From Rhodosorus marinus CCMP1338 (taxonomy: Eukaryota; Plantae; Rhodophyta): DNA of 64,000 bases. The notes under the pieces are model-generated. The model was not told the DNA's origin, did no database searches, and saw only the letters and a program-made list of their open reading frames with translations. The stretch covers positions 1,364,001-1,428,000 of the forward strand of contig JAMWBK010000004.1 in assembly GCA_029953675.1 (NCBI GenBank). Reading direction: 5' to 3'. Positions 20,701-40,184 of the stretch are shown here, piece by piece (the stretch's first letter is position 1; each line of letters opens with the position of its first letter). Made by a program: the position numbers and the translations under genes.

Positions 20701-22746
20701 GCGCTGTGGCGCACTCTGTTCATATTCTCGATCTAGTTGTCAGCATCTAGAGACACCTAGTTGCTCGCATTTCACATCTTTTCTACTTGTTGGCAACAGG
20801 CATGAACAATATTCTTGCACAGCTATAGTAGAGTAATGACCCAACCTGGGAGATGAACGCCTGAGAAACTTTATAGATGCATCCATCCACTGAGGTGAAT
20901 CGTGGGATCCATTTTTAAATCCCAGCAGCAACGAACATGCAACTTGGCAAAGCAGAAAAAGAGGAGCTACCTCGTTGACGAGGCTATTTTGGAGTTTCTT
21001 CCACTCGCTCGTCTGGAAGCAACATAAATGCAACCACCCTCATCTGTTCGTAGCAAGCACGCGTTTGAATTCCAACGACCGGCGAAATGGTATTCAGGAC
21101 ATCCGAGGTGCTGGTGCAGCTCAAGCGAAGTAAATTCGGAAGCACTAGTCTTTTTTTCCCCTCGGGGTTTTTTTTTCAGCCTCCGATTAAACCATTCGTT
21201 CGTTCGTTCGATCGGGTCAGAAATCCGATCCACGATCAGAAAAATAAAACGTTCACCGATGATCTAGACTACGCAGCGGGCCACTAGCGCTGGTTTAAAG
21301 GGAATCTCGTCCTTAAGTATCCCGCGCAAAAAACAGCGTTTAGCTTTTCTTGGATTGCCCTCACCCAAATGATCCTGGACGCCGCTATGGAGAAGAGAGC
21401 TGTAAACGCCTAGTTGCGCCTTTCCGATTTTGTCTTTTTGCCCCCTTCTGCTTCCCCTTAGCAGCGAAAGTAAGGTGTCTATAGAGCAACTACAGAGGGC
21501 TTTGCGTTCAGCACCCCCCCCCCCCAAATTCCGAGAAAACCCAATCTGTCCATATTGAAACGGCAACAAGAAAACAAAAACCACAGAACGTCATCTTTTC
21601 TCATTTGTTCATTTCATCAAAACCCGATCAATAAAACAAGAAAACAATCAACAGATAAATTAAATGATTGATTTATTGATTGAGGTAGACCCTCTTTTTA
21701 TCGCCTCTGCTGATAACTTCTGCAAACAAAAGTCAGCAAGGATCCATTTGTAAGAAAAAAAAGAGGTAATATTCTGAATGAAGGTTCTAATTCTATTGAA
21801 TCTCGGTCACAATGTCCGTCCCCCTTTTGTAATAAGATGTAAATTTCATACAAACATTTTTCTGAATGTATTATTGGATAAAATTTAAAATATCGAAATA
21901 TTATTGGACAATATGAAAATGAAATAGAATAACTTTGGATAGCTTTTTGACTTCCGCTCCACTGGAAAATTCTTTGTCAGAAGTTTCTGTTCTCGATTTC
22001 ACGTTAAAAAACAGAAGAGAAGCACAGAAACCCACTGAAACAACAAGACATCTCTTCCCCCCCACCCCCTCTCCCTCCTCATTTTCCTCCTGTCTAGATC
22101 TAGAATATATAGAGTTCTATACTTCATAAATTCGGCTTGGTATTTACAATAATTTATGTAATTCATGATATCATCGATTCTCTTGAAAAATGGGGATCCA
22201 TGACTTCCCTTAAATATAGGGTTTTTTAATCCAATCTTGGATATCGAATTCGACCACGCAGCGCCATGACCTTTCGAAGATGGATCAGTTTGCAGCATCG
22301 TTTGGTGTACCAACCCACCCCATTCTTTCTGAGACTAGAATACGCAAATTCAATATTTATCAAAAAGTAAGCAGGGTTATGAGATGCTATGGAGCCAGAA
22401 GGTTGGGGGGGGGGGGAGGAAGTTGCTTAGCATGGTTTGGGTTAGCATTAACTGCTCAACAATACTTTGGCCAACAGTTTTCTTGGGATTTTCAAAGTGG
22501 GGGGTTTTACGAGCTTTTTAAGTCAAGAAGTTGGACGCTCTGTTGAGAGGTGTAGGTTGGAGAGGTTTTGGAAAGGTCGAAGAGGGTGTTGGACGGAAAT
22601 ATAAGGGTGTCTGGGTCTGGTTCTGGTCAGGATCCCTGGAAGAGCTATGAGGAGTTAAAAAGCATTGGGAAGGCGGGGTGAGGGGGTGGGGCGAGATCTC
22701 CGTGTACAGGGGAGTGAAGAAGTTTGCTCTGACAGAACTCTGCGCG

Positions 22747-25700
22747 ATGAGGGGTATGAACGTGATCTTGATCGTCGCGGCGGTGGTCGTTGTGGCTTCT
22801 TGTAAACCTTCGTTTCCGCTTTTCATCAATTTTGGTCCAAAAAATGCTCCAGAGTGCGGATCTGAGGGGTCGTTCATCGAGGATACTGGTGAACCTTTCC
22901 GCTTCCATCATGACAACTTGATGAAGTACGGATGGAGAAGTGCAGTGACGCCCTTTGAGCCTACTCGAGCGAAAACAGCGCTCAGGAAAACGGACGCGAA
23001 AGTTGGATGTCCTCGGAAGAGCTTCGCATACATGCAGTTCGGAGACGCCAAGAAGGATCCAAATGAACCTGATGTACTGTGGCAATTGAGCGACGTCCCG
23101 AATGGGTACTACACCGTTGACTTGATTGTCGGTGACGTTGCCCGAACTGGGGATGTACATTCTGTTTTCGTGAATGGACAAAAATTGATCCAGAAACTCC
23201 AAAAAACTGAGACAGAATTCCTGAGGACCACGACTGTTGTGCTTGTCTCGAATGGGAGGATGAGGTTCTTTCCGATGGGGGGAAGGAACACAAAGCTCAA
23301 CAGGATAATAATTCACGAGGGTGGAACTCCGAAAACCGGCGGGAGCCTGAAGCAAGTTGAAGTCAATTTCCTTCCGAAAGGAGAAACAAATTGCGGCCAA
23401 AAGTTCCTAAAGGACGTGGGTGAGGCGTACGGATTGAAGAAAGAGGGATACAGCTATGGATGGTTCACAGCGGGTACTGAGGATGAGCTGAATGACGGCA
23501 ATCGGTACGACATCAGCGACCGGATGGTCAAGAGGAAAGGAGAAGACAATTGCCTCTTCTCCTCGTTCGCATCAATGCAGAAAGCCGGAGAACCTGACGC
23601 GGAGTGGAAGATCGACAATTTAACTAACGGAAACTACAAAGTGCAAGTAGTTGCCGGTGATCCGCAAGCGAAAGGGTTTGGCTCAACTCACTACATAGAA
23701 GCCAACGGAGTGCGTGTCCTCCGAGCTACCGTACCGGACAAGCCTGAAGATCGTGTCACTGGCTCTGCAACCGTCAAGGTATCCGACGGTACAATGAGAA
23801 TATCTGCTCAGAAACGGGGCAAAAACACAAAGCTATCTGCGGTTTCGCTGAGGAGAACTGGGCCCTTCCCGGTGCCCAAACCAGAGCCTACTCCAAAACC
23901 TCGATCCCCGCCCGATGAATGTATTCCAAATCCGTCGGAGTTCGATGGAGCGCTCATCTCCAATCTTAGGTGCGAGGACGTAGCGCAGTTACCAGTTTAC
24001 AGGCAGATCGGATTTAACGGAAAGAAAGCGGGACTGGTTGGTTCAGATGGGGTTTCTGTTGAATGGACAATGTTCCTGCCAACATCCAATCGTAACCTTG
24101 CCTATGATCACAAATACTTGCTGGCAAAATCCGGCGAAGGCCTGCAGATGCGCACCAGCTTTGGATCTATGAAGGGAACTGCAAACAACCAACTGAACGC
24201 CTTAGGAATCGGTCTGGATCTTCCGTCGAGGTCACTTTCACTGAGAATGACGTGGAAGCTCCCTGCAACCCTGAAGGGGAAGGGCGAGAGAGCATGCATG
24301 TGGTTCGGGAATAGCCCTCAAAAGTTTGTCTGGCTTTGTGTCGTGGCGCAGGGGAACAAATTCTTCATTGAGCTCATGGTGGAGAAGGATGACAAACAGC
24401 TGAGCAGAAAGCGGGTTCAAGTGAATGTGGACGAGAATCAGAGACTTGTAGTTCTTCAGCTTCAGCTTCTTTCGCAGTCAAGCGAAGTAGTTGCCAGATA
24501 TCGAACTACTGGAAAGCTGAAGGATTTCGCGTCTGCTGAAGTCCCTCGAGAGTATTTCAGCTTTGATGCTGCAAATTCGGACTTCAGGATGCTCTCAAGG
24601 TCCTATGCCGGACCGTATGTCAACCAGGGAACAGACAAATCCGATACTAGCCACAGATTCCTCATGACGGACTTCGAGATGAGAGAGATCCAATTTTCTG
24701 ACGTAAGGATGCCTCCACACCATCGCAGAGGAGAGTAGTCTAAACTCACAATGCTAACGACCCGTGTGTGTATTCCTCCTGATCTAGGACGTTAAAAATA
24801 CCCCCGGAATTGACTTCAAGACGACGTTCTTGAAGAATTTGAATTTCGTCACAGCAATGGCATTCGGACCCAACGGAAAGCTCTACACAACGAACGCAGT
24901 GTGCGACGTAAACGTTATATCTTTCAAAGCGGACGGGATCACAGAAGCCAAGAGAGTGACATATAAACCACTCGGAGAGCGCCTGTGCCTTGGACTAGAA
25001 ATCGATCCGGATTCCACCCCGAGCAATGTGATACTCTGGTTCAGTCACTCGGACAGCTCACAGGACGATGGACAAGCAAATTCTGGAAGGATTTCCAGAG
25101 TCAAGGGGGTCAAGTTGGATAAGGTCCAACACGTCATCACGGGCCTGCCAAGGGCGATTGGAAATCACGGTCCGAATTCCCTTCATTTCGGGCCCGATGG
25201 ACATCTGTACTTCACGATTGGGAGCAACACTGCTGGGGGCGCGTCGAATCCGAGGTCACCTACTTTTGGTTTGCGACCTGAGCAATGCTTGGCTGCAGCT
25301 CTTTTGAGGGCAAATGTGAAGAACAAGGGCTTCAATGGAAATTGCCTAGAGCCGGCAGATCCAGTTGAAATGGACAAGACCGGAATTGCGAGTGAAAAGT
25401 GCAACAACCTCTGCGACGTTGAAGTGTACGCTTCAGGTCTGCGTAACTCCTACGACTTTACCTGGCGAAACGGTGACTTGTTCGCAACGGAGAATGGACT
25501 AGGAGGAACGGGAACTGCTCCAATGATCAGCGACGATTATAAAGAGGGAGACTCGTGCAATAAGCCGGTGCCTGACGGAAAGATTGATCTGCAAGATCCA
25601 GAATCCACAGAGGACCTACTGCACAAGATTACGAGGGGTGCCTACTATGGGCACCCCTGCCCGCCCAGAAAGGAGTGCATTTATATGGGGGGCTTCCCAA

Positions 25701-27001
25701 AAGCAGCAGACGAGATTAAGGTACCACGACTTCCGCTTGAGGAAAACAAGGGTGGTCAGTACACGCTCACAACCGACATCTACAAGAAAAGACGCAACCC
25801 ACATTCAAAGTTGTTGCCGCCTATGCTCAGCTTTGGACTGAGTAGATCCCCGAACGGTATCATAGCCTACAAGGGCAATCAGTTTTGTGGAAAGATGAAG
25901 AATGACCTGCTAGTCACTTGGTATTCGCAGTTCGATCAAGTTCGATGGTTGCACATGAACAGCAAAGGGGGCGTAGAAAGAGACGAAACCCTCCGAAGGA
26001 CATCGCTGCAAGCTGGTGGCTTGGATCCATTGAGAAACCCGCTTACGTTGACGCAGAACAAGCGCGGGGACCTGTTCATTTCTGAGTTCTTCGGTATGCA
26101 AGTCCGAGTGTTGAGGCCGAAGGGAACAGGATGCAATAGGCAGACTGCGTCAAGGGCGACAATCCACAGACACGTAGACATTTCTGGAGCCTCTTTGGGT
26201 CATCACATATACGTATTCGGCGGACAGAATTCGGACCTCGATGCTGCGCAGACTTCGGATGTCCATTCGTTTGACATTGTGGAAGACAAGTGGACTACTC
26301 TAGAAGCGAAATTGCCCGTGGCGGCAAGATCTCTTGCCGCTGTGAACTGGAAAGACGAGTCGGTCTTTCTAATAGGCGGTTTCAATGATGATATGGGAGT
26401 GAGCACTTGTGCAAGATTGTCTTTGGAAGGTCAAGTCCACGAGCATGCATCAATGCCTGTTCCCAGAGGAGGATTGAGCGCTATTGCGCTCGGATCGGAG
26501 CGGATTTTGGTTGTGGGAGGGTCAGAACATGCGTCGTTGTGTCCCAGCCGTGAGACGTATATGTATAATCCACACGCAGAGGTGTGGTCCCGGGGGCCGG
26601 ACATGCACGACGAGAGAATGTTCGCAGCATCTGCTTACGTGAACGGAAACGCAATTGTGTGCGGTGGAGTTGGAAAGGCCCTCACGGAGATCCAAACTTG
26701 TGAGAGCTTCGATGGTAGTTCGTGGAAGAGAATTGCAAGTCTTCCTGCCCCCCTCAGCAGAGCAGGAGCAGTATCAACGGGCGATTCCCTGGTGCTGAAG
26801 GGCGGAGAGACGAACGGCAAAGTTTCTCGGGAAATCCTGGAGTACAACCCACAAGAAGATGCGTGGGACACGATTGGAACTATGGCTGTCGGGAGATCCG
26901 CTGGAATCGTCACCAAGGTTCCTGGGGCCGGGATATACGCAATGGGAGGAAGAACAGATGTTGGGGAAGCTCCTCACGCGGATATTTTCGAATACAAGTA
27001 G
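22747..27001 (+). CDS. Large secreted modular protein (~1389 aa): signal peptide, 2 carbohydrate-binding-like beta-sandwiches, Pro-rich linker, ConA/LamG-like sandwich, glucose/sorbosone dehydrogenase-like propeller, 6 Kelch repeats
   Basis: ORFs 22678-24738 and 24830-27001 join via a phase-0 intron 24703-24787 (gtaagg...gctaac...ctag). Signal MRGMNVILIVAAVVVVASC. Propeller motifs TAMAFGPNGKLY, NHGPNSLHFGPDGHLY and YASGLRN. Kelch GG blades IYVFGG, VFLIGG, ILVVGG, AIVCGG, LVLKGG and IYAMGG. Confidence 0.85.
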
Positions 27002-29057
27002 GTGGAGGACTGCTGCTTTATGCAACGTCCTTTTGTTCCGCAAGGGGAGCTTGTGGTTCGCTTGTCAACCGAGGGATAATCAAATTGCACATATCCAAAC
27101 CCGTTGCTTGACAAGGAGTCCGTCGTCTGTCACACACACAGCTGAAGAAGCTACTGGTCATGACTATCTAGTTGCTATCAACGAACACCATACATGCCTT
27201 GCAATGTCGCGCATAGCTACTACTAAAAAATGCCGACTTTTAATAAAACTCATGACAGATACATGAACATAACAAACGTAATTCGCGGAATTGACAGCTC
27301 GCGACAGGGTGGCAGTCGTCCACTTCTCCCTCGTCAGCTTCAAAATTCAAGGACAGTCTCTTCATGGCGAGTATACACCCACTCGATAGGAGCAAGAACA
27401 ACTACTTTCCTACCATACTCCAGCTCTCTTCTGCTGCACGACAACAGGAATCATGCCTGCGATCCACGGAGTGACAAAAACTAGGACTGTAGGCGAGGGC
27501 GAGAATTAGCCTAAAAGACGTAATCACATAAAGTAACATACAGCGACCTGCGTTTGAATGATTTACTTACAAGCCCATTTGAAAGCTTTGGCCCTGTTCA
27601 CCCCGCCCGTGTAGGCCATATAGAACATGTGCTTGTCATGCTGCCAATCGTACTGGTGGATCATCCGATCGAAACAACGAGGAACACTTCATATTAGCAA
27701 AAATCAAAGCCAATTGAAAAAGAAAACACGCTCTACTCATGGGAGCCGCTATAGGGCACGCATGACAGGGAATCTGTCTAGCTCCTCACCTCCTCACGAG
27801 TCGGAATCTTCTCCTGTGGCTCCTCTTTAGGAATTGTTTTCTCTTTGAGGGCCCCTGCTTGCGAGGCCTTTTGCATGTTTCTCGTGGAATGGAAACCACG
27901 CTGGTATTTTCCAGGCGCAACACCCCCTGACTGACTCAAGCCTCGCATAAGGCCTCCCGAACGACTAAGAACAGTGAAGGCTCTCGACTACAATAAACAA
28001 AGAAAACGAAGGCGTAGAAAACACGCAACAGACAATGAGCAACCAAGGCTATAACCAAACCAACTCCAGCTAATTGGAGAGGAACAAGGAGTTCCCTGCT
28101 GTTCCACTAACACAGAAATATAGCGCAGAAAATCCACCCACTAACAGCTCGAAGGCATAGAAAAGATCCCATTCAAATCCACGAAAATCTAGAAGCACGG
28201 ACAGAACTCAAGGATTCGCTCCACTTACCGACGACATTGTTGATCAAATAAGCCTTCTCAAACACTCGATATGTTGTATCCTCTTCGAATCTTCTCCAAA
28301 CAAAAAAAAGCAAACGTGTAGACGAAGCCTGCCTCAAGTCTATGCCGTCCCACAACCTCCCTTCCTCCTGACCGCTCCGACCCTCTGCCTAGAACCTCTA
28401 TATAGAACCCCCTTTTCTATTGTATACAACCCACCTAACCGTCACCCACGATTTCAATACCGTTTGCCGGCCAGAATCAAATGGCCAATGCTCCTCAGCC
28501 CCGACCTTCTATTTTCAATAAAAACTTCATTCAAAGATACCACCCCAGGGGTAAAATCCAAAAAAAAAATTACTCTGAAACTCTATTTCCGCTTAAATAA
28601 AATCAAAAAAGCACACTTCCGCCAAAATGTTCAGCTTTGGTAACCCTCCCGAAAAAAACGATAGCGAGGTCTCAAACCAATCAATATTAGATGAAAGTCA
28701 GTCGATTTAATAATGATTGAGTATATCAGTCAACATGAGATTGTCGCACGTCAGGCAGCTGCGGCCCAGGCATCGCGGTCGTTCCTAGTACTTCCTCCAG
28801 AGCGCCTTTCCGGGCCTTTCGAGGGATTAGATGAGTGACAATGCCAAGAAATGTACACAGATTGTCCTCCCCAGTACGCGCTGAGAATAATCTAAGTGTT
28901 GCATCTATTTATCCCGGCGCGCCGCCGGCGGAAGTACAAATCTCGGTTATTTTGAAGTAGTTGCAGCGTGGGTTTTTGTTTCTTCATCCCCTGCCCACAG
29001 GAGGCGTCGCACCTCTCGTAGACACTGCGATACTGGTTGTTTTCCCTGATGATGTAC

Positions 29058-29978
29058 TCAGTTCGCCAGACTCTCTATTATGCTCGCCCGCATCTCCCCG
29101 AGAATATTGGAGGGTTGAGAGCTTCCAAGTTTGAGGACAGACTGTATGACTTCGAGTTCCATACCAGTCGTATCCAGCCCACAGAATGCAGACCAATCGT
29201 TCGCCACGACTCCAGTTCCTACCAATCCGCTTCCCCGATTCACAGTTCCAGCTACCAACGGAACCTGTTGACGCGGCAAAACACTCTTAGCACAATCTTG
29301 AGAAAGCTTCGTGTAGAGCTTATCGTCGAGTACGAACGCATACCTGGAGAAGAGACGACAGCTCATCTTGGTCCTCAATTGAACATTCAGGATGGACAAT
29401 TCCTCCCTGGTTGGTAAACACCGAGTAGGTCCCAACCAGAGGTTCTCCCGCAATGGAATGTCTTATAGTTTCCACTCCCAACACGTCAGCAACGACCTCC
29501 TCGCTCTCCTTCGAGATATCAGGATGGATAAGAGCCACATAATCGTTGCAGGCAATACAGTTTCCCAAGGCAGTCAACCTGTCACTACAACGTACTATTC
29601 GTACAGTATCGGGAAGAGAATTCGCCATATGTTGCATCTCCTGGTCTGTCACTGAATCAGGAAGCACCAGTCCGTTCTTATTCCCAGCAACCATCCTACC
29701 AACTATCCTCGTCCCGCTCACTGATACGCGAACCACGGGAATGTGATCCGCAAGCTCGGCCTAATCAGCCAAAAATTTCCACAACAATCAGAACAAAATT
29801 TGAGCTCCAAACAAAGAAGGGAAGAAATCCAAGGTGGAACTTAGTTTACCTCAAACACCGAATAAAAGTTCTCAGAACCACCTGAAGCAACCAAACAGTA
29901 GGTGTTCGTTAGACAAGAGAACACTCCTATCTCACTGCTCCCCTCAAACTGACAAGTTACCGCCGACCTCTCCTGCAT
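29058..29978 (-). CDS. EIF6: Eukaryotic translation initiation factor 6 (250 aa)
   Basis: Exons 29978-29850, 29760-29344 and 29264-29058, all phase 0. Motifs [50 protein letters not shown] and [13 protein letters not shown]. Confidence 0.97.
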
Positions 29979-30275
29979 GTTTGGCAATCGATCAACAACG
30001 CTTACGATAACAAAAACAAACAAAAGCACTGGAACTACCAAAACCAAGCTCTTGTATTCAATCCTTCCCTCTTCTTCACGTATACTAATATCAACGCTTG
30101 CTCAAAACTACCCAAGGCAATCCCCCCCTCCCGCATTCCTACGAGCACGTCCCGCTCTCCTCGCTAAATAGCCCCCGATCGTTGAAAAAAAAAACTTGAG
30201 CACAAATTCCGTCAGGATATGTCGACGACGTTCGCAAAAAGCCTTAAAAGAGTACCATTTTGAGGGGTTCTTGGT

Positions 30276-30517
30276 CTTCGCGGTAATGAGTACTATTCTG
30301 TCCGCTTTGTGGCGGCGTAGTGAAGTTCTTGAAAAAAGGAACCGAAGCTCGAGCCATCGTTTTGTCGCATCACCCCTCCCCCGTCTCCATTCTGTCCTTC
30401 GCGGTAATGAGTACTATTCTGTCCGCTTTGTGGCGGCGTAGTGAAGTTCTTGAAAAAAGGAACCGAAGCTCGAGCCATCGTTTTGTCGCATCACCCCTCC
30501 CCCGTCTCCATTCTGTC
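30276..30517. repeat. Perfect 121-bp tandem duplication
   Basis: 30276-30396 is identical by eye to 30397-30517 (cttcgcggtaatgagtac...ctccattctgtc). Confidence 0.95.
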
Positions 30518-31004
30518 TGCTGCTGCCAAAGGTCTTTGTGGAGTATTTAGCGTGTTCGTGAACTGGTCGTTGTGATTCAGCAGAGGGTAACGCCGCCCAT
30601 CGTTCTGTTGGATCACGGCTTGGTGACTTTCGCCCTTTCCCTCCACGCGCTTCTGACGTGTGAACTCTGTTCGGGAACTTGCCAGGTCCGTTGTGGCAGC
30701 GTAGAGCCAGCTATAGAACTATTTGAAGATATAGCTAGCGTCTCCGAATGTGATAAGCATAGCTCACCCCTTCATTGGAATGATTCTGACCAAGAAACGA
30801 CATCACGTATTTTCAAGTTTCCATCTGCAAGTACGTCTACAAACCACCACAAACCTCCTCAAGTAAGCAAATCAGAAAACCTCGCGTTAACGAACTTCAG
30901 ATAAGTAACACCCCATCTCTGTGCGACAAGTCAAGGTGACTACCCAAAGAAGGACTATTCGGAAGACTAACGAAAATGGGAAAAACGGCTCTGCCGTAGG
31001 ACAC

Positions 31005-31084
31005 CGATGAACATTGTGCGTAAATACACATAAATTCCCTTAAGACCACGATGAACATTGTATATAAATGCACATAAATTCCCC
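31005..31084. repeat. 44-bp-period imperfect doublet just upstream of the tRNA
   Basis: cgatgaacattgtgcgtaaatacacataaattccc versus cgatgaacattgtatataaatgcacataaattccc. The second copy contains a TATA-like tatataaa about 30 nt before the tRNA. Confidence 0.85.
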
Positions 31085-31097
31085 GACGAGGGTAACT

Positions 31098-31171
31098 GCG
31101 CTCGTGGCCAAATTGGATAAGGCGCCCGCCTACGGAGCGGGAGATTGCAGGTTCGAGTCCTGCCGTGCGTG
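31098..31171 (+). tRNA. tRNA-Arg (anticodon ACG), intronless
   Basis: Cloverleaf: acceptor GCGCTCG/CGTGCGT, D-arm TGGCCAAATTGGATAAGGC, anticodon arm CCCGC-CTACGGA-GCGGG, T-arm GCAGG-TTCGAGT-CCTGC. Confidence 0.95.
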
Positions 31172-31179
31172 CGGTATAC

Positions 31180-31184
31180 TTTTT
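31180..31184 (+). terminator. RNA polymerase III oligo-T terminator of tRNA-Arg
   Basis: A T5 run starts 9 nt after the discriminator base. Confidence 0.7.
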
Positions 31185-31292
31185 CCTTAGAAAATTAGTA
31201 TCCTTGGAAGAGGTTGATGAATTCATGTTCTTCATGTTTCAGCATCGTTTTACGCCCATTTCCCTAACTTAGCGTGGGAAGGGGGAGCAGCG

Positions 31293-31355
31293 GGGTATTC
31301 AGTTATATAGGTAGATGCTGGCCAGGGTATTCAGTTGTATGGGTAGATGCTGGCC
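31293..31355. repeat. 32-bp-period doublet
   Basis: gggtattcagttatataggtagatgctggcc versus gggtattcagttgtatgggtagatgctggcc. Confidence 0.9.
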
Positions 31356-32246
31356 GGCAACGGCAATTTTTCCGGGTTTGTCTGAACTTGGTATGCTTGA
31401 CGATGCCTCGCCTTTCGACTGGCTTGAAGAGGCGGTACTGTCTGGTACCAAGCACACTACGCTTGCCTCTCTGCGTCAGCGATTGCACATACGGGAAAGC
31501 TCAGCGGAGGTAAGTAGTTGAAACTGCAATAGCACTAGTACGGAAGAGGATCGTGTGATGGCGAGTGGGGGTTCGCGGGATGTTTGCTGTTTTTTTCACT
31601 TCCCACTGCAGTGCCAGCGTACGAGCAGGTCCTGTCGACTATGAGCACATGCTCCGAAGCTTGACAACTTATGGATCCACGGCCTCAATCCCTAAGATAC
31701 TTTCTCAGTGAAACGTTCGCATTGCTCGTTGTCTAAGACATGAATCTGAATGTTTTGTCTGAACAAAATTGAAACTGAATTCATTTTTCAAAATTGGGGT
31801 CCCTTGACTAACGCCATGAACTTTGTCGTCTTTCTCTAGCTGCAGAGATACCGGTCCCGTATCCGGTTGACTCGTGCACATTCAACTAACAAGCCGAATT
31901 TAAACCACTCTTGGAGCTTTTCAAGAGCTATTCCAATGGCTATCCACGGCCCCACTACAACTCATTTGAAAAAACGCTGCGTTTTTACTCAACGAGGAGT
32001 GCTCGTAGATAAATTAAAAAAAAAATTGCATGTGGGAGAGAGAGTGCACCGAGAATTCACTCCTTTCAGCAACTGCAATTGAACCAAGAAACTGGACATG
32101 ACGGATAACGGCTTACGTTCGTAGCGTAACGGAAGTCGATCGCAAGATAAGATTCAACAATAACAACTTTAAGCGACTCGACAGTCTTCCCACTGTGGCG
32201 AACCCCTTCACCAACTGTTGCATGAATATCATAACCGGCGATTAGT

Positions 32247-32344
32247 GGGCTCCCGGTAATTTTCAGAAGCTCGTGTCACTCGCGTCACTCACGTCGGGCT
32301 CCTGGTAATTTTCAGAAGCTCGTGTCACTCGCGTCACTCGCGTC
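32247..32344. repeat. 49-bp tandem doublet with internal cgcgtcact sub-repeats
   Basis: gggctcc(c/t)ggtaattttcagaagctcgtgtcactcgcgtcactc(a/g)cgtc x2, two mismatches. Confidence 0.92.
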
Positions 32345-35300
32345 ACCGCTCACTGCAGGCAGCAGAAACGGACTAGTGGTCTTGGGAACACGCGGATGTA
32401 TTCGAAGAAACTACGTAAATATCTATGGATGGAATAGATCCGTTAAAACTCCCTCATTCACATGCATTGAAGGTCGTCTTCCAGCTCCTACTCGTTGAAA
32501 CGAGCCCAAACCAAGCTTTAGCGTACTATCAAACCCCAGATCTCAACGGCGGGCGAGCCTGTCGATTGTCCAAACAAAATCGGTCCAAGCCACTACCTTA
32601 CGAAAATAGCTCAGCAAGTGAATTCGGGTCACCGTCCCCGTGTATCCGCAAGAGCGGCTACTGATGCGCATCGGTTCGCTACAACAATTATGGGAGATAA
32701 TCGCCATTCCGTGCTCTAGCATCAACTGAACGTGGCCCTAAAATCCTCAACAGCGCCGTTCACTTCACACTTCCCTAACCCCTACTAAAAAAAACCCAAC
32801 GGAAATAAATATTCGAGCAAGCCACATCCTCCATCCTTACTACTGGCCGAAAACCCAAAAGTCCGTTTAAAACCAAAAAAAAAGTCATAGCGGATGTGTA
32901 CCCATTTCAATCCCATCGATGGTCAAGGAAAACCAGTTCTTACAGAACCTCAAAAACACTAAAACATACCACGAAAATATCTGAACCTGAACACTCTCTG
33001 ATTTTTGGCAATAAAAACACCCAGCCTATCAAAATCACCTCCATCCATTTTTATCCCAAAAATTTTCCCACGACGTTGAAAATAGTCTTGAATTTTAATA
33101 CAAAGACGAAAGCTCTCACACTAAACCCCCCTCCCCCTCTCTCTCGAACTTTTACTTACTTTCGCTAAGCGTTGCACCATCTTCCTTTTTGTTTCCTTTT
33201 TTCTTTTCTTTTCGGGGGAGATTTTGGAAGAGTTCTAAAATCATTTCATTCGAAACATAATCATAAAATAAAACAAAATTGATCATATAAAAAAAGGAAG
33301 CGAGCTCATCGTGGTTGGCCCAATGAAGAGGATCTGTGAAACTGATTGCAATAATGAAATCTATACAATAAATCCCTTCTCAGCCAATAACCATCACTTT
33401 GAATCAAGCAATGGAAAAGGAGTCTAGAAATATTGTAGGGGCTCGACTTATAATTTACGTTTACGTTGTAATATAATGTATAAACGATATAATAATTTTA
33501 TATTTTATATATTAGTGGATAACATATCGTGTCTATATACCGTTTTCCAATTCGCTAGTGCGTGGATCTTCTCCTTAATTCACTGTTTCTTCTAGCTGAA
33601 AACTATGCTAACTGTCTACGGCCTCGTATAAATATTGAAATATGCTACACTTTTGCATGATGATCGATGAGTCTATGTTTGTTTGTTTTTGAGAAGTATT
33701 CGTACAATTCTTCCTTTTCACCGGAAACCGGAGTGGAGGTTCTAAACAGCCTTTGGGTCGAAAAACAAGCGAAAGCGATAGTCCACGGCTTTCGGCGACA
33801 CTGAAAAATTATCAACAAGCCTACTTGCCTGGACTAACTGGGATGCTTCGATTTCAGCAGGGATTGGACCTAAACCTAGTAGCAGCCTATGTTTTCGAAG
33901 ATGGGAAGAGGGGTTGTTAATAAGTGCACTAGACGACGAAAACGGCGAAAACAGGAAACGAAAGGGTGGGAGTCGATTAGAGATCGCTGGAAGACTAGGC
34001 CACAGTGTCCATTGCTGGCCTCACCCCCAAGCAGCGAGATTTTGGGCTTCCTGGCTTGTCAATAGATAGTTTTTCTTGTACCCTTTAGCCCCTCTGATGT
34101 GCATAGCTTTATGGAGGATTGGTTCTCCCTGTGGTACATGATCTCTTCTGAGTTTTGTGAAAGTAAGTCCACCCTGTACTAAGAGTAAATTTTAAAGTAA
34201 TTCCACTACTAGTAAGCTTACAAAAATATTGAATTAATAAAATAATGCAATTATCCGGTCCTATGACCAATGGAAACAGGCATGAAGAACGGGGATCGTT
34301 GGTGATTGGCGAATTTTCGATTCGAGAGGGCGAATGAAGCACTTTCAAGGTTTGTCATCAAGAAGCGAGATAGTTCAATTTTCGTCCGAATGAATGGTCG
34401 GGGTTGTGAAGTGGACAAATAATTACGATGAAGCGAATACTTGACTTTTTTTCCTCTTCAGAGAGACCACCAGCGCAGGTGCTGAAGTCCAACGCCCGCA
34501 AGCCCTCCTCTGCAAAAAACTAATAGAATACCTTTCATTGATTGGTACTCATTGGCGGACCGTGTATATGCTGAAGTTTGGAAGAAAGTACGGTACCCAC
34601 TTACACCGTGTACTCATTCATTGCTCGGATGCTAAACAAAATGGTGCGCGAAATACTTTAAGGGGGGTCAGTATCCGCTTGTTCGCCTGTCTGCTAAGAA
34701 ACACTTGAATTACGGAATAGATTCCAGCACTTGTGTTTTGCGCGAGCAACAACCCCGGTTTGAATCCACGACTTCAATCGGATGCTTTGAATCGATCGCC
34801 TAACAGTTGTATTTTCTCCAGGAAAACGAGATAAAGCGGACCTCCTAAAAGTTTTCCTTAATTCTATAATCGGCGTATTGACTACTTACAAAGCCACAAG
34901 AACTTCTAAAAATTAAGACCGACATGAACTTACAATACCGACGTTCTCCATTTGTATTAAATTTTGTTGGTACTGCTCCTACTGCGCTGGAAAATGAAGT
35001 CGAATTTAACATAATTCAATAGGGGTCTTTTTCCGAAGAAACTCCAATTTTTTGTGAAATCGCATTTTAAAGTTTATATATAAAATATCTTCAATCTGGG
35101 ATAGGTTATCTGTTTCATTGGTTTTATCCACTTTCTCGACAACTAAGACTTAAAACGGCGGTCCGGAAAACCCTACCAAACGAGTGGGTCGCGCGCTCTC
35201 GTCTTCTCGAAATCTTATAAAATTTGAACTGCACAAACGCTCTATATGGACCTTTCGAATAAAAAAAAAGAAAAAAAGATGAAGCAAAAAACGAGGGGTG

Positions 35301-36333
35301 GGAACAAGGGGGGTAAAAAGAATTCGCGCATGACTCCTTACAAGTTCCGAAATCAGCTCGATTATCTCCCAATCTCTGGATTCAGAGAATTTTATTCACC
35401 GGATGAAGAGGGGGGGATACAAACTAGGTTCGAGTCCAATCCGTTCTTCGTTGTAATACAGTAAAAACATATCCTTAAGCTGAATTTATTTGAATATACA
35501 ATATATTAGCGTGATATGGTTGGCTGGAAAACCGATAAAGGACAGAAGAAAAAGAGTCGATGGATGGAACGCTGCAGCCGTTGAAGGTTCTCAAAAACAA
35601 CATAAAAAGTGGAAAGTGAACCCCGAAAAAAAAAGGCCCTCCCCCCCCCTCCCGCCCACCCACTCCTGGAAATAGATATAACCTTTAAGGAAAAAAAAGG
35701 AAGATTTCTTGAAATCTTGTTGGCTGTCCTCGATTATGCTTGATTTATTTTTTTTTCTAGTCAAGCCCACCAAATAAAAATTGCTAGCTTTTTTGCATCC
35801 GTGTGAAAATGAAGGGGTTCCCGGGGGGAGGCAGGAGGAGGAGAAGGAGAGGGGGGATGAGACCAGCTTAAGAAAAGATGGAATAAGGTAATATGGGAAT
35901 GAAATCGTCTCTGTTTCATTTTTTATTATTATTAAGGACAGATCTTGGGCCCGAAAATCAAAATAAAAAAAATTCGACGGGGAGTTCATCGGATTAAACG
36001 ACGAACAGAGGAGGGGTGGGAAAGGAGCGTCTATTTCTACTAAAACACGATAAAAAGATTTCCAAAATAAGGTGGGCCCCCTACGAAAGAAAAGAAAGTA
36101 CAAATGATTTGGAAGAGATAATCAGTCGGCAAAAGAAGAAATTTGTGTGTTTTGAAAAAAAAACAAGGAGTAGTAGTGGTGGGCGGTTGGAAGGGAGATT
36201 TTAGGCTTCCAACATATATATGGAGGGAGTAAGATCCTAGGAGGTGGGAGGGGGGAGGCAGGGATGAGGAGAGAGAGGAAAGGGAGTGTCTAGAGCGTAG
36301 TGCGTGGGGTGAACAAGTCTAACTGCTGGGACG

Positions 36334-36855
36334 ATGGATCCGATCTTAGTGAAGAAGGGTGTGTATAGGTGTCCAGTGAAGGGATGCAGCAAGGTCTCGC
36401 AGAGGAAGCACAATGTACAGATGCACTTGAGAAGGCATACGAAGGAGAAGCCGTTTAAATGTAGTTATGAGGGATGCACGATGGCGTATGGATGGAAGTC
36501 CAGTTTGAATCAACATGAAAAGCTTCACGTGAGGGATGGAGACAAGAAGGTCGATTGCGGAATGACTTTACTCGCCCATGTGGCGGAGGAGGAGAACCTC
36601 AAGTTGCCATACAACTCGAGCACTCTGTTCAAGCTTCTTTCTAATGAGAAGGAGTCGATGAATCTTTCAGAGGTCTCTAATGAGTCGCTGGAAAAACCTG
36701 AAGATGAGGTTGAGCCGGAGTTTTACTGCGAAGTGAAGGTCTTCGGGGATGCAAAGCCCGCGAAGTTAATTAGCTGTCCCCATGATGCCTGTTGCAAACT
36801 GTTCAGCTATGAACACGACATGAAGATTCACTGCAAAGAGCATATTCAAGCCTGA
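36334..36855 (+). CDS. C2H2 zinc-finger protein (3 fingers, C-x4-C type)
   Basis: YRCPVKGCSKVSQRKHNVQMHLRRH-TKEKPF-KCSYEGCTMAYGWKSSLNQHEKLH, plus C-terminal SCPHDACCKLFSYEHDMKIHCKEH. Confidence 0.92.
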   Translation: MDPILVKKGVYRCPVKGCSKVSQRKHNVQMHLRRHTKEKPFKCSYEGCTMAYGWKSSLNQHEKLHVRDGDKKVDCGMTLLAHVAEEENLKLPYNSSTLFKLLSNEKESMNLSEVSNESLEKPEDEVEPEFYCEVKVFGDAKPAKLISCPHDACCKLFSYEHDMKIHCKEHIQA

Positions 36856-37034
36856 TTTGGCTAAAAGGAACTGCACATATATTTAAGAAATGACGACTGG
36901 CTCGGTCTGGACAGGAATACGGGCTCTGTTTTAAGTGTGGAGGTAAACCAAACCACATTTGGCAAGTAACTGATGAATTAAATGAAAACTATTTTTTGGT
37001 CAAGCGACCCAGAGCCATGTCAAGTTAACAAACC

Positions 37035-37425
37035 TCAGCTGAGACCGCAACGGAACTAGCCACGTACTCTCTGTTGGGAACCGCTACCATGGAATTCCTT
37101 CATGGCAGACGATAGATTGCCGCACTACGTTCACAACGAACTGCGCTCTAGCTCAGCGTTAAGATTCGCAAAAGGACCCAGCCACCCACCCTCCGTCCAA
37201 CCACGACCATATTGAAAGAAACATAGCTTGCTGGATTGTGTTAAAGACTGAAACCCGCTCCACTAGATCAGCGCTGGTCTAGTGGAACTTGAGCTGGAAC
37301 GCAAAGGACGTTGAGTGCTAGCACTCTCTGTCAGCAACCACGACCATGTGGCAAGATGCATGCCAGACCTGGCTTGAAGCACCGCGCTAAGACTGAAAGA
37401 CGATGACCTAGGGATCAGCGCTATA
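37035..37425. repeat. Three highly diverged ~120-137-bp units
   Basis: Anchors aacc(g/a)c(t/g)accat at 37079, 37199 and 37336, and ctag..tcagcg at 37148, 37263 and 37408. The stretch ctag..actctctgt precedes units 1 and 3. Confidence 0.55.
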
Positions 37426-37604
37426 GTAGTCTGGTGGATGACTTCTGTCAGGATATACTTTCTTATTTGTAGTACAAGATAATTTCTTTACAAGCTTAAC
37501 AAATGCAATATTCCGCGAAACTATGTGCGTAACAGCAAATGACCGTCTGAGCCGCGATGGCTATTTGACCACTCAAAAAGACATCGACAAAACCCAGATA
37601 ACCA

Positions 37605-40184
37605 TCAGCATTTCACGGATTTGGGAACGAACACGCTAATTCTCGCATTTCGGTATTCGGCGACGTAAATATTCCCATCATCGTCTTGAGCAATGCTGAG
37701 GGGGTTGTTCATTTCCTCTCCTCCAGTTGACTTCGTGCTCCTCCTGAGCGTCTCGTCAAAGACCACCTTGGTTCCCGCATTGTTCAGCTTGAAACGTTTG
37801 ATTTGATCTCCAACGGAGTAGTAGGCCACCAGAAGATCGCCCTTCATCGCTCCGCAGAACGCGTTGCCACGGTAGGCTATGATACCGTTCGCGGATTTGC
37901 TAAGTCCAAGGGGTAGAAGGGGTTCCTTGTACGGAAACAGTCCTTTCTCATTCCCCTGTGCTTGAGTCCCGACCGGGTAGCTCGTGATCTCAAAAGCGTA
38001 CGACCTCCGCTCGCTAGGGGGTCCGGCGAGTCGGGCGTCCACACCACGCGTAGGGTTCCCAGCATCTCTGATACACTCGTTACGTGAAGGATTGGAATGT
38101 CCATAGTACCTGCCCTTCCGCAGCTCCAACAGGACATCCGGTCGGTCCACAACAATGTACTTGCTCAGGTCATCGCTTCGTGTTATTGGCTCATTGCAGT
38201 CATCGCCAGGCTTCCAGCCTTTCGGGAGCTTGGGGTGGGTGGCTCGGCCACTCCCAACGGCGTTGTCCGTAGCATAAATTCTCCCGTTCGGATGGAAGTC
38301 GAAGTCCCAGATGTTGCGCAGTCCTGAGGCGAATACTTCGACGTCACAATTCGGCTTCGCCTTACTGGCCTTCCTTGTTTCATCAAGGTTACGCTCGGAC
38401 TGGTTTGGTGTACAGTTGCCCTTGAATCCTGCTCTCTGTACCGGTGCAATTAAGACCGCTGCCGAAAGCGGTTGCTCAGGATAGTAAAAGGCTCCGTACT
38501 GGAAGGCGGTCCCTCCTGCCCCAGTGTTCCCACCCTGGGCAATGAGCAGGCTACCGTTCTCCATGAACTTGATTTGGTTCGTTGCGTGGGCGGAGTCCGA
38601 AGTTGGTAATCCCCAAATTACGGTCTTCGCATTTTGGAAGTTGTTACCACAGAACCTTGAGATTGATCCCGAGTTGGCTTTTCTGTCGGCATTGTACGCC
38701 TTCGAATGCGAAACCCAGATACACTTCTGCCCCTTCGCCCAGTCTGGGTCTACTGTTATGCCGAGCGATAATCTGTCCTGCAAGGGTAGATTGTACTTCT
38801 TTCTCGATATAATTCTCTTTCTCTCTGCGTTAATTTTGAACTCCAGTACTGTGGACTGGGAAGTCAATACAAGCATCGTCTCGTCCGGTGTCCATACAAG
38901 TGAAACTGGCAGCGTCACGGGCAGATGGAATAGGTCGAAGTCGATTTCGGGTTCTCCTGGCGGCTTCGTCGGAGCCGGAGTTTCTTTCACCTCCATTCGT
39001 ACCACCTCAAAGTCGTCGACGACCCATTTCGCATTCTCATTGGATTTACCGGCCGATGTTACAAAGCCGCACAATGAACGTGTCTTCGTGTCTGGATCAA
39101 TGGTTGCCTGGTCCTTACTCACGATGAGTCCTTTCACGTTGGTAGTAACCACTTTCCTAAATCCACCATTTCCGAGAGCGTAGGAAGCCACCACCGTGTT
39201 CTTCTCGAAGGCGCTGATCATGAGTTGCAGTCTCATCTTCCTGTTTCCAGGGAGGCTACCGCTCAATTTGGACTGCTCTGACATAACAATCTTCCCATTC
39301 TCTTCTTTCTCGACCAAATATCGTAGACCATTGGGCTTCGATATCAAGCAAATTTGAACGTAGTCGTCGATTGTTGCGCCCAAGAACAAGCAAAGTCTTT
39401 CGTTATCGCCGCCCAGCCCCTTTGGAACTGCAAAGTCGATCCTCACTCTTAGCTTCCTGTTCGGTAGCGGCAATCCCACAGACAAGGGATTCGCCATCAT
39501 ATTGACCGACTTCCCTCCCCATGTCCCTGCTCTACTTGTCACAACCAACGCCCCGTTCCTGACAGTCAAATGTCGCCTCTGGTAAGAATCGCCCTTGTCG
39601 GCGGGTACATACGCAGTAAACCCAGTTCCTACTCCCGTACTATCCTTTAACCCTCCAGACTTCCCGTTGAAGTTCAAGTTGAAAGGGAGATCGACCATAA
39701 TATTCTTACAGTTTAGAGTCGAAATGCTTTTGCCCGGAAACTCTGAGGGCTTCGGAGTGCACCCGCCGCTGCCACCGCCGCTTGTGGCCGAGACATCGAA
39801 CACTTTCTTTACCCTGGAGATGGCATCAGACGTACTCCCGTTCGTTGGCCATAACTCCAACTGGACCTCCACTTGGTTTAGGTTTGCTATTTCAGTGGAA
39901 AGGGTAACTCTGAAGTTCACGCCTTTGTTTGTACCAGCAGGGACAGTTAGGAACCTAAAACCCCCAATGAGGTTTCCATTGTTCGTCCTCTTGAACTTCA
40001 ACACCAGCTGCCTCTGCCTGGTCGCTGTGTACACACAAGCAAAAGTCGCCTGTCGGCTATCCTTGTCGATTGTATCCCCTTGGGATTGTGCAAAACTGGC
40101 TCGCTCATTCTGCGCACTACCAAAGGAGATCAAGAACGTGCAAACCAGCACAACTCCCAGCCCCAATTTCACACCCGCCATCAT
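37605..40184 (-). CDS. Secreted paralogue (~859 aa): signal peptide, small N-terminal beta-sandwich, ConA/LamG-like sandwich, glucose/sorbosone dehydrogenase-like propeller; intronless
   Basis: Single open frame; the first ATG is at 40184 (the track start at 40241 is GTG). Signal MMAGVKLGLGVVLVCTFLISFGSA. Extensive collinear similarity to the 22747-27001 protein: CxPxPSEFxG..ISxLxC, ANSGxISR, CDVEVxASGLRN, YYGHxxPxRxECI, GLSxSxNGIIAYxGNxFCGxMKxDLLV and DETLRR. Confidence 0.9.
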   Translation of the reverse strand: MMAGVKLGLGVVLVCTFLISFGSAQNERASFAQSQGDTIDKDSRQATFACVYTATRQRQLVLKFKRTNNGNLIGGFRFLTVPAGTNKGVNFRVTLSTEIANLNQVEVQLELWPTNGSTSDAISRVKKVFDVSATSGGGSGGCTPKPSEFPGKSISTLNCKNIMVDLPFNLNFNGKSGGLKDSTGVGTGFTAYVPADKGDSYQRRHLTVRNGALVVTSRAGTWGGKSVNMMANPLSVGLPLPNRKLRVRIDFAVPKGLGGDNERLCLFLGATIDDYVQICLISKPNGLRYLVEKEENGKIVMSEQSKLSGSLPGNRKMRLQLMISAFEKNTVVASYALGNGGFRKVVTTNVKGLIVSKDQATIDPDTKTRSLCGFVTSAGKSNENAKWVVDDFEVVRMEVKETPAPTKPPGEPEIDFDLFHLPVTLPVSLVWTPDETMLVLTSQSTVLEFKINAERKRIISRKKYNLPLQDRLSLGITVDPDWAKGQKCIWVSHSKAYNADRKANSGSISRFCGNNFQNAKTVIWGLPTSDSAHATNQIKFMENGSLLIAQGGNTGAGGTAFQYGAFYYPEQPLSAAVLIAPVQRAGFKGNCTPNQSERNLDETRKASKAKPNCDVEVFASGLRNIWDFDFHPNGRIYATDNAVGSGRATHPKLPKGWKPGDDCNEPITRSDDLSKYIVVDRPDVLLELRKGRYYGHSNPSRNECIRDAGNPTRGVDARLAGPPSERRSYAFEITSYPVGTQAQGNEKGLFPYKEPLLPLGLSKSANGIIAYRGNAFCGAMKGDLLVAYYSVGDQIKRFKLNNAGTKVVFDETLRRSTKSTGGEEMNNPLSIAQDDDGNIYVAEYRNARISVFVPKSVKC

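Follow-up and report, generated by a model that had tools for sequence, protein, structure and literature searches.

Two convergent genes in the red alga Rhodosorus marinus CCMP1338, here called copy 1 and copy 2, encode paralogues with signal-peptide-like N-termini whose shared core belongs to a large bacterial protein family. They lie in a 64,000-nt stretch of contig JAMWBK010000004.1 (assembly GCA_029953675.1, positions 1,364,001 to 1,428,000 of the forward strand), the whole of which is called the window and provides the numbering used throughout. Taken alone, the bacterial origin of the two genes and their integration in the algal genome can be asserted with high confidence. The whole of the explanation that we favour, in which these bacterial-type paralogues have been domesticated by the alga and act on extracellular polysaccharide, is in our judgement reasonably probable. 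The secretion signals, the presence of two kinds of carbohydrate-binding fold and the placement of bacterial homologues in exopolysaccharide (EPS) loci together point to action on extracellular polysaccharide.

Copy 1 occupies 22747-27001 of the plus strand and encodes 1389 aa in two exons joined by a single 85-nt intron. Its ATG is at 22747, exon 1 covers 22747-24702, and exon 2 covers 24788-27001 including the stop. Two long plus-strand reading frames, at 22678-24738 and 24830-27001, underlie this model, and removal of 24703-24787 puts copy 1 back in frame; the intron falls exactly at the boundary between the concanavalin A (ConA)-like domain and the propeller. In the NCBI model KAJ8905691.1 ('hypothetical protein NDN08_002196', Rhodosorus marinus) the junction is identical; this model begins three residues further downstream and otherwise equals copy 1. 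Copy 2 is a single open reading frame (ORF) running from the ATG at 40184 to the stop at 37605, within a minus-strand frame at 37605-40241. The two genes are convergent with 10.6 kb between their 3' ends, and a tblastn search found no third copy within the window. Their features, with the evidence for each, are these.

22747-27001, plus strand: copy 1 gene (NDN08_002196), from ORFs and a splice model whose junction is identical in the NCBI model
22747-22803, plus strand: copy 1 signal-peptide-like N-terminus, aa 1-19, by inspection by eye
22822-23322, plus strand: copy 1 carbohydrate-binding module (CBM)/malectin-like sandwich 1, aa 26-192, from a hidden Markov model (HMM) match to sandwich 2 at E 7e-54 (alignment A5)
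23359-23859, plus strand: copy 1 CBM/malectin-like sandwich 2, aa 205-371, from an AlphaFold2 model (predicted local distance difference test, pLDDT, 88.6), Foldseek, and Malectin on record for the relative P0057
23911-24693, plus strand: copy 1 ConA-like jelly roll, aa 389-649, from 27% identity to copy 2 (E 1e-26) and the HMM envelope
24703-24787, plus strand: intron of 85 nt, GT..AG (GTAAGG...CTAG), from the sequence and the transcript contig L090, which is without this stretch
24803-26125, plus strand: copy 1 GSDH-like six-bladed propeller, aa 658-1098, Pfam GSDH at 37.0 bits (cut-off 25)
26135-26998, plus strand: copy 1 six-blade Kelch propeller, aa 1102-1389, Pfam Kelch_1 and Kelch_6 at E ~1e-21
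37605-40184, minus strand: copy 2 gene, 859 aa, without intron, from the ORF, the exact protein on JAMWBK010000004.1 and MMETSP transcripts at 93% identity
40113-40184, minus strand: copy 2 signal-peptide-like N-terminus, aa 1-24, ending ..FGSA/Q, by inspection by eye
39774-40112, minus strand: copy 2 N-terminal module, aa 25-137, 113 aa, unrelated to the copy 1 N-terminus
38991-39773, minus strand: copy 2 ConA-like jelly roll, aa 138-398, from an AlphaFold2 model (pLDDT 90.3, predicted template modelling score 0.90) and Foldseek
37617-38951, minus strand: copy 2 GSDH-like six-bladed propeller, aa 412-856, Pfam GSDH at 32.4 bits (cut-off 25), with NHL in the last blade

The two copies have about 700 residues in common, collinear from C.P.PSEF..C through ASGLRN to DETLRR..NPL. 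In BLASTP comparisons of copy 2 with copy 1, the first shared domain was 27% identical over 272 aa (E 1e-26) and the propeller 38% identical over 420 aa (E 4e-77), in the same order. Both N-termini show by eye the n/h/c layout of a signal peptide (MRGMNVILIVAAVVVVASC followed by K in copy 1, MMAGVKLGLGVVLVCTFLISFGSA followed by Q in copy 2), and inspection revealed a hydrophobic C-terminus in neither copy. Copy 1 consists, in order, of the signal peptide, two CBM/malectin-like sandwiches, a Pro-rich linker, the ConA-like domain, the GSDH-like propeller and the Kelch propeller; copy 2 consists of the signal peptide, the 113-aa module, the ConA-like domain and the GSDH-like propeller, with no Kelch and no CBM. 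An earlier note, made from the letters of this DNA alone, had described a convergent pair of signal-peptide paralogues about 10.6 kb apart with some 700 aa of collinear sequence, a spliceosomal intron and differing ends (two sandwiches and six Kelch blades in one copy, a different single module and no Kelch in the other), and all of this was borne out.

That note had also proposed a polysaccharide-binding family, and the modelled structures agree with carbohydrate-binding folds in the accessory modules. Sandwiches 1 and 2 of copy 1 are homologous to each other by HMM comparison. The model of sandwich 2 matched, in Foldseek at E 3e-5 to 1e-3 and template modelling (TM) scores of 0.4-0.56, the structure 5uj6, CBM35, CBM6 and the ANX/FER(ONIA) malectin-like ectodomains. 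In 5uj6 the match is to the accessory beta-sandwich region of Bacteroides uniformis beta-glucuronidase 2, which we take to be of the CBM57 class. Pfam Malectin (PF11721) is on record for the close bacterial relative P0057, and UniRef names an intron-retaining fragment of copy 1 type 'Malectin domain-containing protein'; the copy 1 sandwiches had no match to Pfam Malectin even at E<=10, and a phmmer search of the copy 1 N-terminus against PDB sequences gave a chance match only. The ConA-like fold was modelled on the copy 2 version with a 23-sequence alignment and is assigned to copy 1 through homology. Its top Foldseek matches were to the C-terminal sandwich of glycoside hydrolase family 43 (GH43) beta-xylosidases (E 5e-9, TM 0.5-0.6), followed by 3mep and 3o12 (proteins of unknown function), GH16 glucanases and legume lectins, among 354 PDB matches at E<=1e-3; neither the algal nor the bacterial versions of this first shared domain had a useful Pfam match at E<=10. 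The Kelch propeller of copy 1 has six hhhhGG blade motifs, matches Kelch_1 at E 2.5e-21 and finds Kelch domains of KLHL/KEAP1 type in the PDB, while Pfam detected no Kelch repeats in copy 2. The copy 2 N-terminal module had no Pfam match at E<=10, and among the ~270 collected family proteins its relatives (phmmer, E<=10) were found only in Rhodosorus. A precomputed 'faint' match to PF27624 ('Porph_assoc') is on record for copy 2 and its orthologue (L001, L089).

The size of the family became apparent only in an exhaustive search. Word-indexed single-query searches returned just 9 and 4 proteins and missed the paralogue, whereas a profile of the shared core, run without a word index against cluster representatives, matched 9363 of them at E<=0.001, 3204 at E<=1e-10 and 1687 at E<=1e-30. 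Among the best 150 profile matches are many large multi-domain proteins, up to 7531 aa long and some with several propellers. Giants of 5000-7500 aa (P0046, P0059, P0064, P0073, P0091 and others) carry four to six copies of the GSDH-like propeller; repetition of this module may have given rise to a distinct class of very large surface proteins. Scanning GTDB with one genome per species, we found the full core, collinear and at 30-38% identity, in Chloroflexota (Ardenticatenaceae, Promineifilaceae, Herpetosiphonaceae, Thermomicrobiales), Actinomycetota (Georgenia, Oceanitalea, Demequina, Motilibacter, Solirubrobacterales), Cyanobacteria (Anabaena azotica, Gloeobacterales), Gammaproteobacteria (Marinobacter, Ferrimonas, Halospina), Myxococcota, Planctomycetota and others, which upholds the bacterial resemblance stated in the earlier note. 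The named eukaryotic members are limited to Rhodosorus, Bangiopsis, Porphyridium and Diplonema. Bangiopsis sp. CCMP1999 has a protein 47% identical to copy 1 with the same architecture (P0015). Porphyridium purpureum has three paralogues of 1778-1849 aa with at least 90% identity (P0107, P0170, P0171), two of them on one scaffold and each with ~600 extra N-terminal residues; their labels, 'Kelch domain-containing protein 8B' and 'Influenza virus NS1A-binding protein-like (B)', hide the CBM-ConA-GSDH part and are misleading names that membership of this family corrects.

A neighbour-joining tree of 137 full-length cores (100 bootstraps) recovered a red-algal-type clade of 14 sequences with bootstrap 99, made up of Rhodosorus, Bangiopsis and Porphyridium sequences together with seven found on short, transcript-like contigs with one ORF each. 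Its sister group (support 89) consists of six bacterial or metagenomic proteins, one of them on a GTDB metagenome-assembled genome (MAG) and another on a contig with Omp85/TamB genes, and six Chloroflexota proteins enclose both (support 100). Three insertions of ~19, 40 and 22 residues (medians elsewhere 8, 14 and 14), with the motifs MD.TGIA, GGNPT..D..VP and.ETL.RST..TGG, unite the red-algal-type clade with the sister and Chloroflexota groups; most of the remaining 112 sequences lack them. The N-terminal motif C.P.PS(E/Q)F.G..S.L.C is likewise common to the red-algal-type clade and its bacterial sister group; the latter has the same N-terminal sandwich, several of its members have the complete sandwich-ConA-GSDH-Kelch order, and the copy 1 Kelch is collinear with bacterial Kelch at 26-28% identity (E 1e-14). 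Copy 1 thus keeps the architecture as acquired, with the sandwich duplicated. Two extra invariant cysteines mark the ConA-like domain of the red-algal-type clade where bacteria have EQAGLWFG, which fits a derived form of the secretory pathway.

Together, the nesting of the red algae within bacteria, the insertions and the far greater diversity of the bacterial family make transfer from bacteria to alga by far the simplest reading of direction, in agreement with the horizontal acquisition that the earlier note had proposed. That the alga received nothing from bacteria, the family being instead ancient and vertically inherited in eukaryotes, a contaminant, or exported from alga to bacteria, we regard as very improbable. 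It could appeal to a eukaryotic member outside the red algae, the Diplonema japonicum transcript P0008 (1476 aa, two ConA-like domains and a GSDH-like propeller), but in the tree P0008 groups with P0054 and Marinobacter-type bacterial sequences and not with red algae. This branching apart suggests an event separate from the red-algal one, and P0008 looks like either an independent acquisition or bacterial carry-over in the transcriptome. The small number of named eukaryotes, the bacterial diversity across many phyla, the derived cysteines of a clade nested in bacteria and the insertions that it has in common with one bacterial subgroup only also speak against such a history, as does the genomic setting described below. 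Vertical eukaryotic ancestry was rejected on the nesting within bacteria and the restricted eukaryotic distribution.

Exact matches to both proteins lie on one 3.19-Mb R. marinus contig (JAMWBK010000004.1, GCA_029953675.1), and the neighbours called around them are Tau95 (TFIIIC), Stn1, a DUF3253 protein, a 173-aa gene and eIF-6. On the transcript contig L090 the copy 1 orthologue forms one ORF, from which exactly genomic 24703-24787 is missing; among MMETSP ORFs, P0018 is spliced and P0020 retains the intron and runs on into it. Since one transcript skips exactly this stretch while another ORF reads into it, the copy 1 intron is real and spliceosomal. Both genes are present in the transcriptomes of another Rhodosorus strain at ~93% protein identity, and their G+C content at third codon positions (GC3), 0.55-0.60, compares with 0.47-0.64 in neighbouring ORFs. 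The earlier note had named bacterial contamination among the findings that would undo its reading; a contig of 3.19 Mb, eukaryotic neighbours, an intron spliced in transcripts and host-like GC3 exclude it. Both genes are under purifying selection, with ratios of nonsynonymous to synonymous substitution (dN/dS) against the other strain of 0.120 for copy 1 (dS 0.30) and 0.124 for copy 2 (dS 0.35). The MMETSP/JGI Rhodosorus transcripts (L089, L090) are thus separated from the window by a dS of 0.30-0.35 and protein differences of ~7%, which indicates that the genome and transcriptome strains called R. marinus are quite divergent.

The duplication that the earlier note had inferred proved to be old, with the two copies falling into two paralogous clades. 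In the neighbour-joining tree, Bangiopsis P0015 joins copy 1 (support 100), along with two further sequences, and copy 2 groups with P0067 (support 92) and then with P0085, P0087 and P0095 (support 78). P0095 belongs to the JGI sample and contig series that also yielded P0015, and hence to the Bangiopsis transcriptome. Because Bangiopsis has both a copy 1 orthologue (P0015) and a member of the copy 2 clade (P0095), the duplication predates the split of Rhodosorus and Bangiopsis, and a recent tandem duplication was rejected for this reason. P0095 is still of CBM-ConA-GSDH-Kelch type, so copy 2 lost its CBM and Kelch after that split. Copy 2 is therefore the derived form, shaped by loss of modules and one lineage-specific N-terminal gain. 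The swapping of accessory modules suggested in the earlier note holds as far as loss and gain are concerned, but the change is one-sided, copy 1 having the full bacterial-type architecture and only copy 2 being altered. It is notable that such old paralogues still lie only 10.6 kb apart.

The strongest functional clue, which the earlier note did not contain, came from where bacterial members of the family are placed. We searched EPS markers against all ORFs of 80 GTDB loci with 6-kb flanks, and found a gene specific to EPS machinery within 6 kb in 36 of the 80, from several phyla; with any marker counted, including the glycosyltransferase families GT2 and GT4, the figure was 47/80. Priming transferases and flippases are few per genome, so 36/80 should lie far above chance, although this was judged without a formal control. 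In a locus of a Chloroflexia MAG (L088), the family gene is preceded by Bac_transf and GT4 genes and followed by Wzz, GT4, GT2, Wzx and Wzy genes, all on the same strand; this homologue is 37% identical and a member of the enclosing (Chloroflexota) subgroup. In Marinobacter similis the gene is flanked by the exosortase EpsH, two GT2 genes and a flippase, and in Ferrimonas pelagia its neighbours are a flippase on one side and Bac_transf, a BBP2 porin and a Wzz/GNVR kinase on the other. The Georgenia gene overlaps, at its start, the stop of a GT2 gene that comes after Bac_transf, and a polysaccharide pyruvyl transferase follows. The markers in Marinobacter, Georgenia and Ferrimonas (Bac_transf, GT2, Wzx, Wzz/GNVR, EpsH, pyruvyl transferase and BBP2 porin) were confirmed with Pfam. 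The bacterial gene is thus embedded in EPS loci of Wzx/Wzy type or exosortase type in several phyla. In Georgenia sp. 1P01AC the pyruvyl transferase is followed, shortly downstream of the family gene, by an FrhB/FdhB-like (F420 hydrogenase beta-type) gene (L012, 10121-11359), whose product may serve as a redox partner within that EPS operon. All three red-algal genera, Rhodosorus, Bangiopsis and Porphyridium, produce mucilage, and by analogy with the bacterial homologues, which often sit in EPS clusters, the algal copies probably tailor the alga's own mucilage.

This context would also suit an enzyme that processes EPS without redox chemistry, such as a lyase, hydrolase or epimerase whose propeller would cleave or modify the polymer to control chain length or release, a task that dedicated enzymes carry out in other EPS operons; the invariant His would act as a general base without a quinone. 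In addition to the embedding of the gene in EPS operons, the likeness of the ConA-like domain to the accessory sandwich of GH43 propeller hydrolases and the lack of a detectable clamp for pyrroloquinoline quinone (PQQ) would favour such an enzyme. Against it, searches of Pfam and the PDB gave no sequence match to a glycoside hydrolase or polysaccharide lyase family, and the conservation of an Arg-Asn pair, which contacts quinone oxygens in known GSDH enzymes, is hard to explain without a quinone. We consider this alternative rather doubtful.

The evidence for an oxidoreductase lies in the propeller. A PDB profile search with the whole core was swamped by designed 'Pizza' NHL proteins, owing to the NHL-like last blade; when rerun without that blade, it matched soluble glucose dehydrogenase (sGDH) and aldose sugar dehydrogenase (Asd) at E 1.6e-5 to 8.6e-4, the only enzyme family found. 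The candidate catalytic His is H779 in copy 1 (25166-25168) and H533 in copy 2 (38586-38588); in profile alignments it stands opposite sGDH His144 and the His of 3A9G and YliI, and it is invariant in both family alignments (A1 and A2). The candidate Arg-Asn pair is R871-N872 in copy 1 (25442-25447) and R623-N624 in copy 2 (38313-38318), within a G(L/F/T)RN motif that aligns to GHRN of sGDH (R228-N229) and GIRN of YliI; the Arg is invariant, and the Asn is invariant in A1 and nearly so in A2. A forced global hhalign alignment also sets the family's G.YYGHPNP motif opposite GKNYGWP of YliI. The roles of the His and the Arg-Asn pair have been described for sGDH, where Arg-Asn contacts O5/O4 of PQQ (PMC6881789).

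These features could indicate canonical PQQ/Ca2+-dependent soluble sugar dehydrogenases that would make lactones from free aldoses or from reducing ends, with the other modules serving only to target them to polysaccharide. Both copies score above the Pfam GSDH cut-off, the catalytic His and Arg-Asn are conserved, G.YYGHP lies opposite G.NYGWP of YliI, and PGAP names bacterial members 'PQQ-dependent sugar dehydrogenase'. There is a precedent for a secreted, CBM-bearing PQQ enzyme in eukaryotes, namely fungal AA12 (PMC6881789). The remainder of the propeller fits less well. The match to GSDH (PF07995) spans profile positions ~3-136 of 332 (6-136 in copy 1), and NCBIfam TIGR03606 (non-repeat PQQ glucose/sorbosone dehydrogenase) scored 18.7 and 22.3 bits, far below its cut-off of 434.55. 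We looked for the clamp on the PQQ carboxylates (R406/R408/K377 in sGDH, R621 in the Coprinopsis cinerea enzyme CcPDH) and found that no basic residue of the last blade is invariant in the alignments. With an invariant His and Arg-Asn pair, but an unaligned C-terminal half, no clamp found and a low NCBIfam score, dependence of the propeller on PQQ is plausible though unproven. Canonical dehydrogenases of this kind are a possibility that we would call, on balance, uncertain and somewhat unlikely. The oxidoreductase claim of the earlier note is accordingly unproven: the conserved residues and the Pfam score speak for it, the partial profile match and the N-P-L at the aligned position of the clamp against it.

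It is also conceivable that the proteins are non-catalytic lectins or scaffolds, with four beta-rich modules binding glycans or partners and cross-linking or anchoring the polysaccharide layer. The CBM, ConA-like and Kelch folds are typical binding modules, in HHIP the GSDH fold serves for binding alone, and among the bacterial relatives are many very large, repetitive surface proteins that carry several propellers. However, the active-site positions of GSDH are invariant across bacteria and algae while surface positions vary, and we think this alternative quite unlikely. The dN/dS of 0.12 does not discriminate between catalytic and binding options.

Several observations weigh against the explanation that we favour. 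An EPS gene was missing from the vicinity of 33 of the 80 loci, and about 20 of the 36 positive loci belong to related Marinobacter genomes, in a count of 36/80 made without a formal control. The genes around the Anabaena azotica, P0057 and P0173 homologues did not hint at a function, and the algal copies 1 and 2 have no informative neighbours. The tree is distance-based only, and several members of the red-algal-type clade are transcript-like contigs without an organism name. In the propeller, the GSDH match covers the first third of the profile only, in both copies; the local hhalign alignment with YliI ends after the Arg-Asn motif, leaving the C-terminal half unaligned, and in the forced global alignment, which is of low confidence, R-I-R of YliI lies opposite N-P-L of the family. 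To our knowledge, eukaryotes do not make PQQ, so the alga would not supply this cofactor itself. The C-terminal Arg is conserved in sGDH, Asd and fungal AA12 (PMC6881789). Finally, the literature yielded no characterised or assayed member of the family, and publications on horizontal gene transfer in Rhodosorus and Porphyridium, or on EPS clusters with GSDH/Kelch proteins, held nothing specific to the family or to an EPS link.

In the explanation that we nevertheless prefer, a bacterial family gene entered an ancestor of mucilage-secreting unicellular or filamentous red algae (at least Stylonematophyceae and Porphyridiophyceae) and has since been fully domesticated. The proteins would be secreted into the extracellular polysaccharide layer and act there on the alga's mucilage or cell-wall matrix, the CBM and ConA-like modules docking them onto the polymer and the GSDH-like propeller serving as the catalytic module. 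Within it, the invariant His would be the general base, and the Arg-Asn pair would polarise a bound carbonyl or quinone. Among the conceivable chemistries we rank first an oxidation of a sugar hydroxyl on polymer or oligosaccharides that depends on a cofactor (a bound quinone), a proposal that we put forward tentatively and at less than even confidence; non-redox tailoring or cleavage is only slightly less likely, and pure binding clearly less so. A broader idea, that the family is a hitherto unrecognised class of EPS-tailoring enzymes in which a GSDH-derived propeller oxidises or modifies polymer sugars, in bacterial EPS loci and red-algal mucilage alike, is attractive but unlikely to hold in full.

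Red-algal mucilages are of ecological and commercial interest, and we know of few extracellular enzymes that shape them in red algae. The placement in EPS loci provides a functional lead for a large bacterial family, one branch of which was acquired by red algae and then underwent duplication and remodelling. Should the propeller be catalytic, a new EPS-tailoring activity would be at hand. If it uses PQQ, the algal proteins would be a counterpart of fungal AA12, relying on a cofactor made by bacteria. If the class of EPS-tailoring enzymes is real, part of the matrix chemistry of red algae would have been imported from bacteria, possibly with a dependence on bacterial quinone.

Several other features of the window lie between the paralogues. 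A tRNA-Arg gene (anticodon ACG) was identified at 31098-31172 on the plus strand by ARAGORN and Rfam (59.1 bits). About 300 bp past the inferred 5' end of the minus-strand eIF-6 gene, at 30276-30517, a 121-bp unit is perfectly (100%) duplicated in tandem, which could be a very recent event or an assembly artefact. The 173-aa neighbour gene has no Pfam match on record, and its ORF reads as a C2H2 zinc finger. Between the tRNA and this zinc-finger gene, the stretch ~31500-36300 is poor in genes, with a lower GC content of 0.41-0.42, no called gene and only short ORFs and small tandem repeats, at 31293-31355 and 32247-32354.

The closest known systems are the soluble PQQ dehydrogenases, namely sGDH of A. 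calcoaceticus (1C9U), YliI/Asd of E. coli (2G8S) and Asd of P. aerophilum (3A9G), which belong to the same Pfam family, PF07995. Like these, the family has a collinear six-blade layout, the His, the Arg-Asn pair and the G.(N/Y)YG(W/H)P motif. Unlike them, it matches at E of only 1e-5 to 1e-3, has a diverged C-terminal half and an NHL-like last blade (in copy 2), and lacks a recognisable R.R clamp in what is a low-confidence alignment; its propeller is fused to ConA-like, CBM and Kelch modules, with extra disulfides, and its bacterial genes reside in EPS loci. Fungal AA12, represented by CcPDH of Coprinopsis cinerea, resembles the algal proteins as a secreted modular eukaryotic protein that joins a six-blade GSDH-type propeller to a CBM, and it uses a cofactor that its host cannot synthesise (PMC6881789). 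The PDB searches gave no sequence match to it, however, and AA12 has an AA8 cytochrome and a CBM1 in place of ConA-like, malectin-like or Kelch modules, and retains a C-terminal Arg ligand. GH43 beta-xylosidases and alpha-L-arabinofuranosidases likewise set a jelly roll beside a propeller, and their accessory sandwich is the closest to the ConA-like domain; but identity is 9-14%, there is no Pfam match to GH43 or GH43_C2, the domain order is reversed, and the GH43 propeller is five-bladed whereas that of the family is six-bladed and of GSDH type. With Malectin/CBM57 and CBM35/CBM6, the copy 1 sandwiches have the same folds, although at TM scores of only 0.4-0.56 and without a Pfam Malectin match.

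Transfers of genes from bacteria to red algae are well documented, and the present case resembles others in its nesting within a bacterial clade, its gain of an intron, a signal peptide and host codon usage, and its subsequent duplication. A published count of GSDH-domain genes in other red algae was made at the Pfam level and is silent on the presence of this family there (PMC12115072). The earlier note had called the pair the best candidate for an undescribed system in the window, and this stands in the sense that no characterised member was found in the literature, but not in the sense of unannotated proteins. Already known are the component folds and labels that name single domains ('GSDH domain-containing', 'Kelch repeat-containing', 'PQQ-dependent sugar dehydrogenase'). 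What is new is the association of the bacterial members with EPS loci, together with a domesticated red-algal branch of this GSDH-derived family fused to a ConA-like domain.

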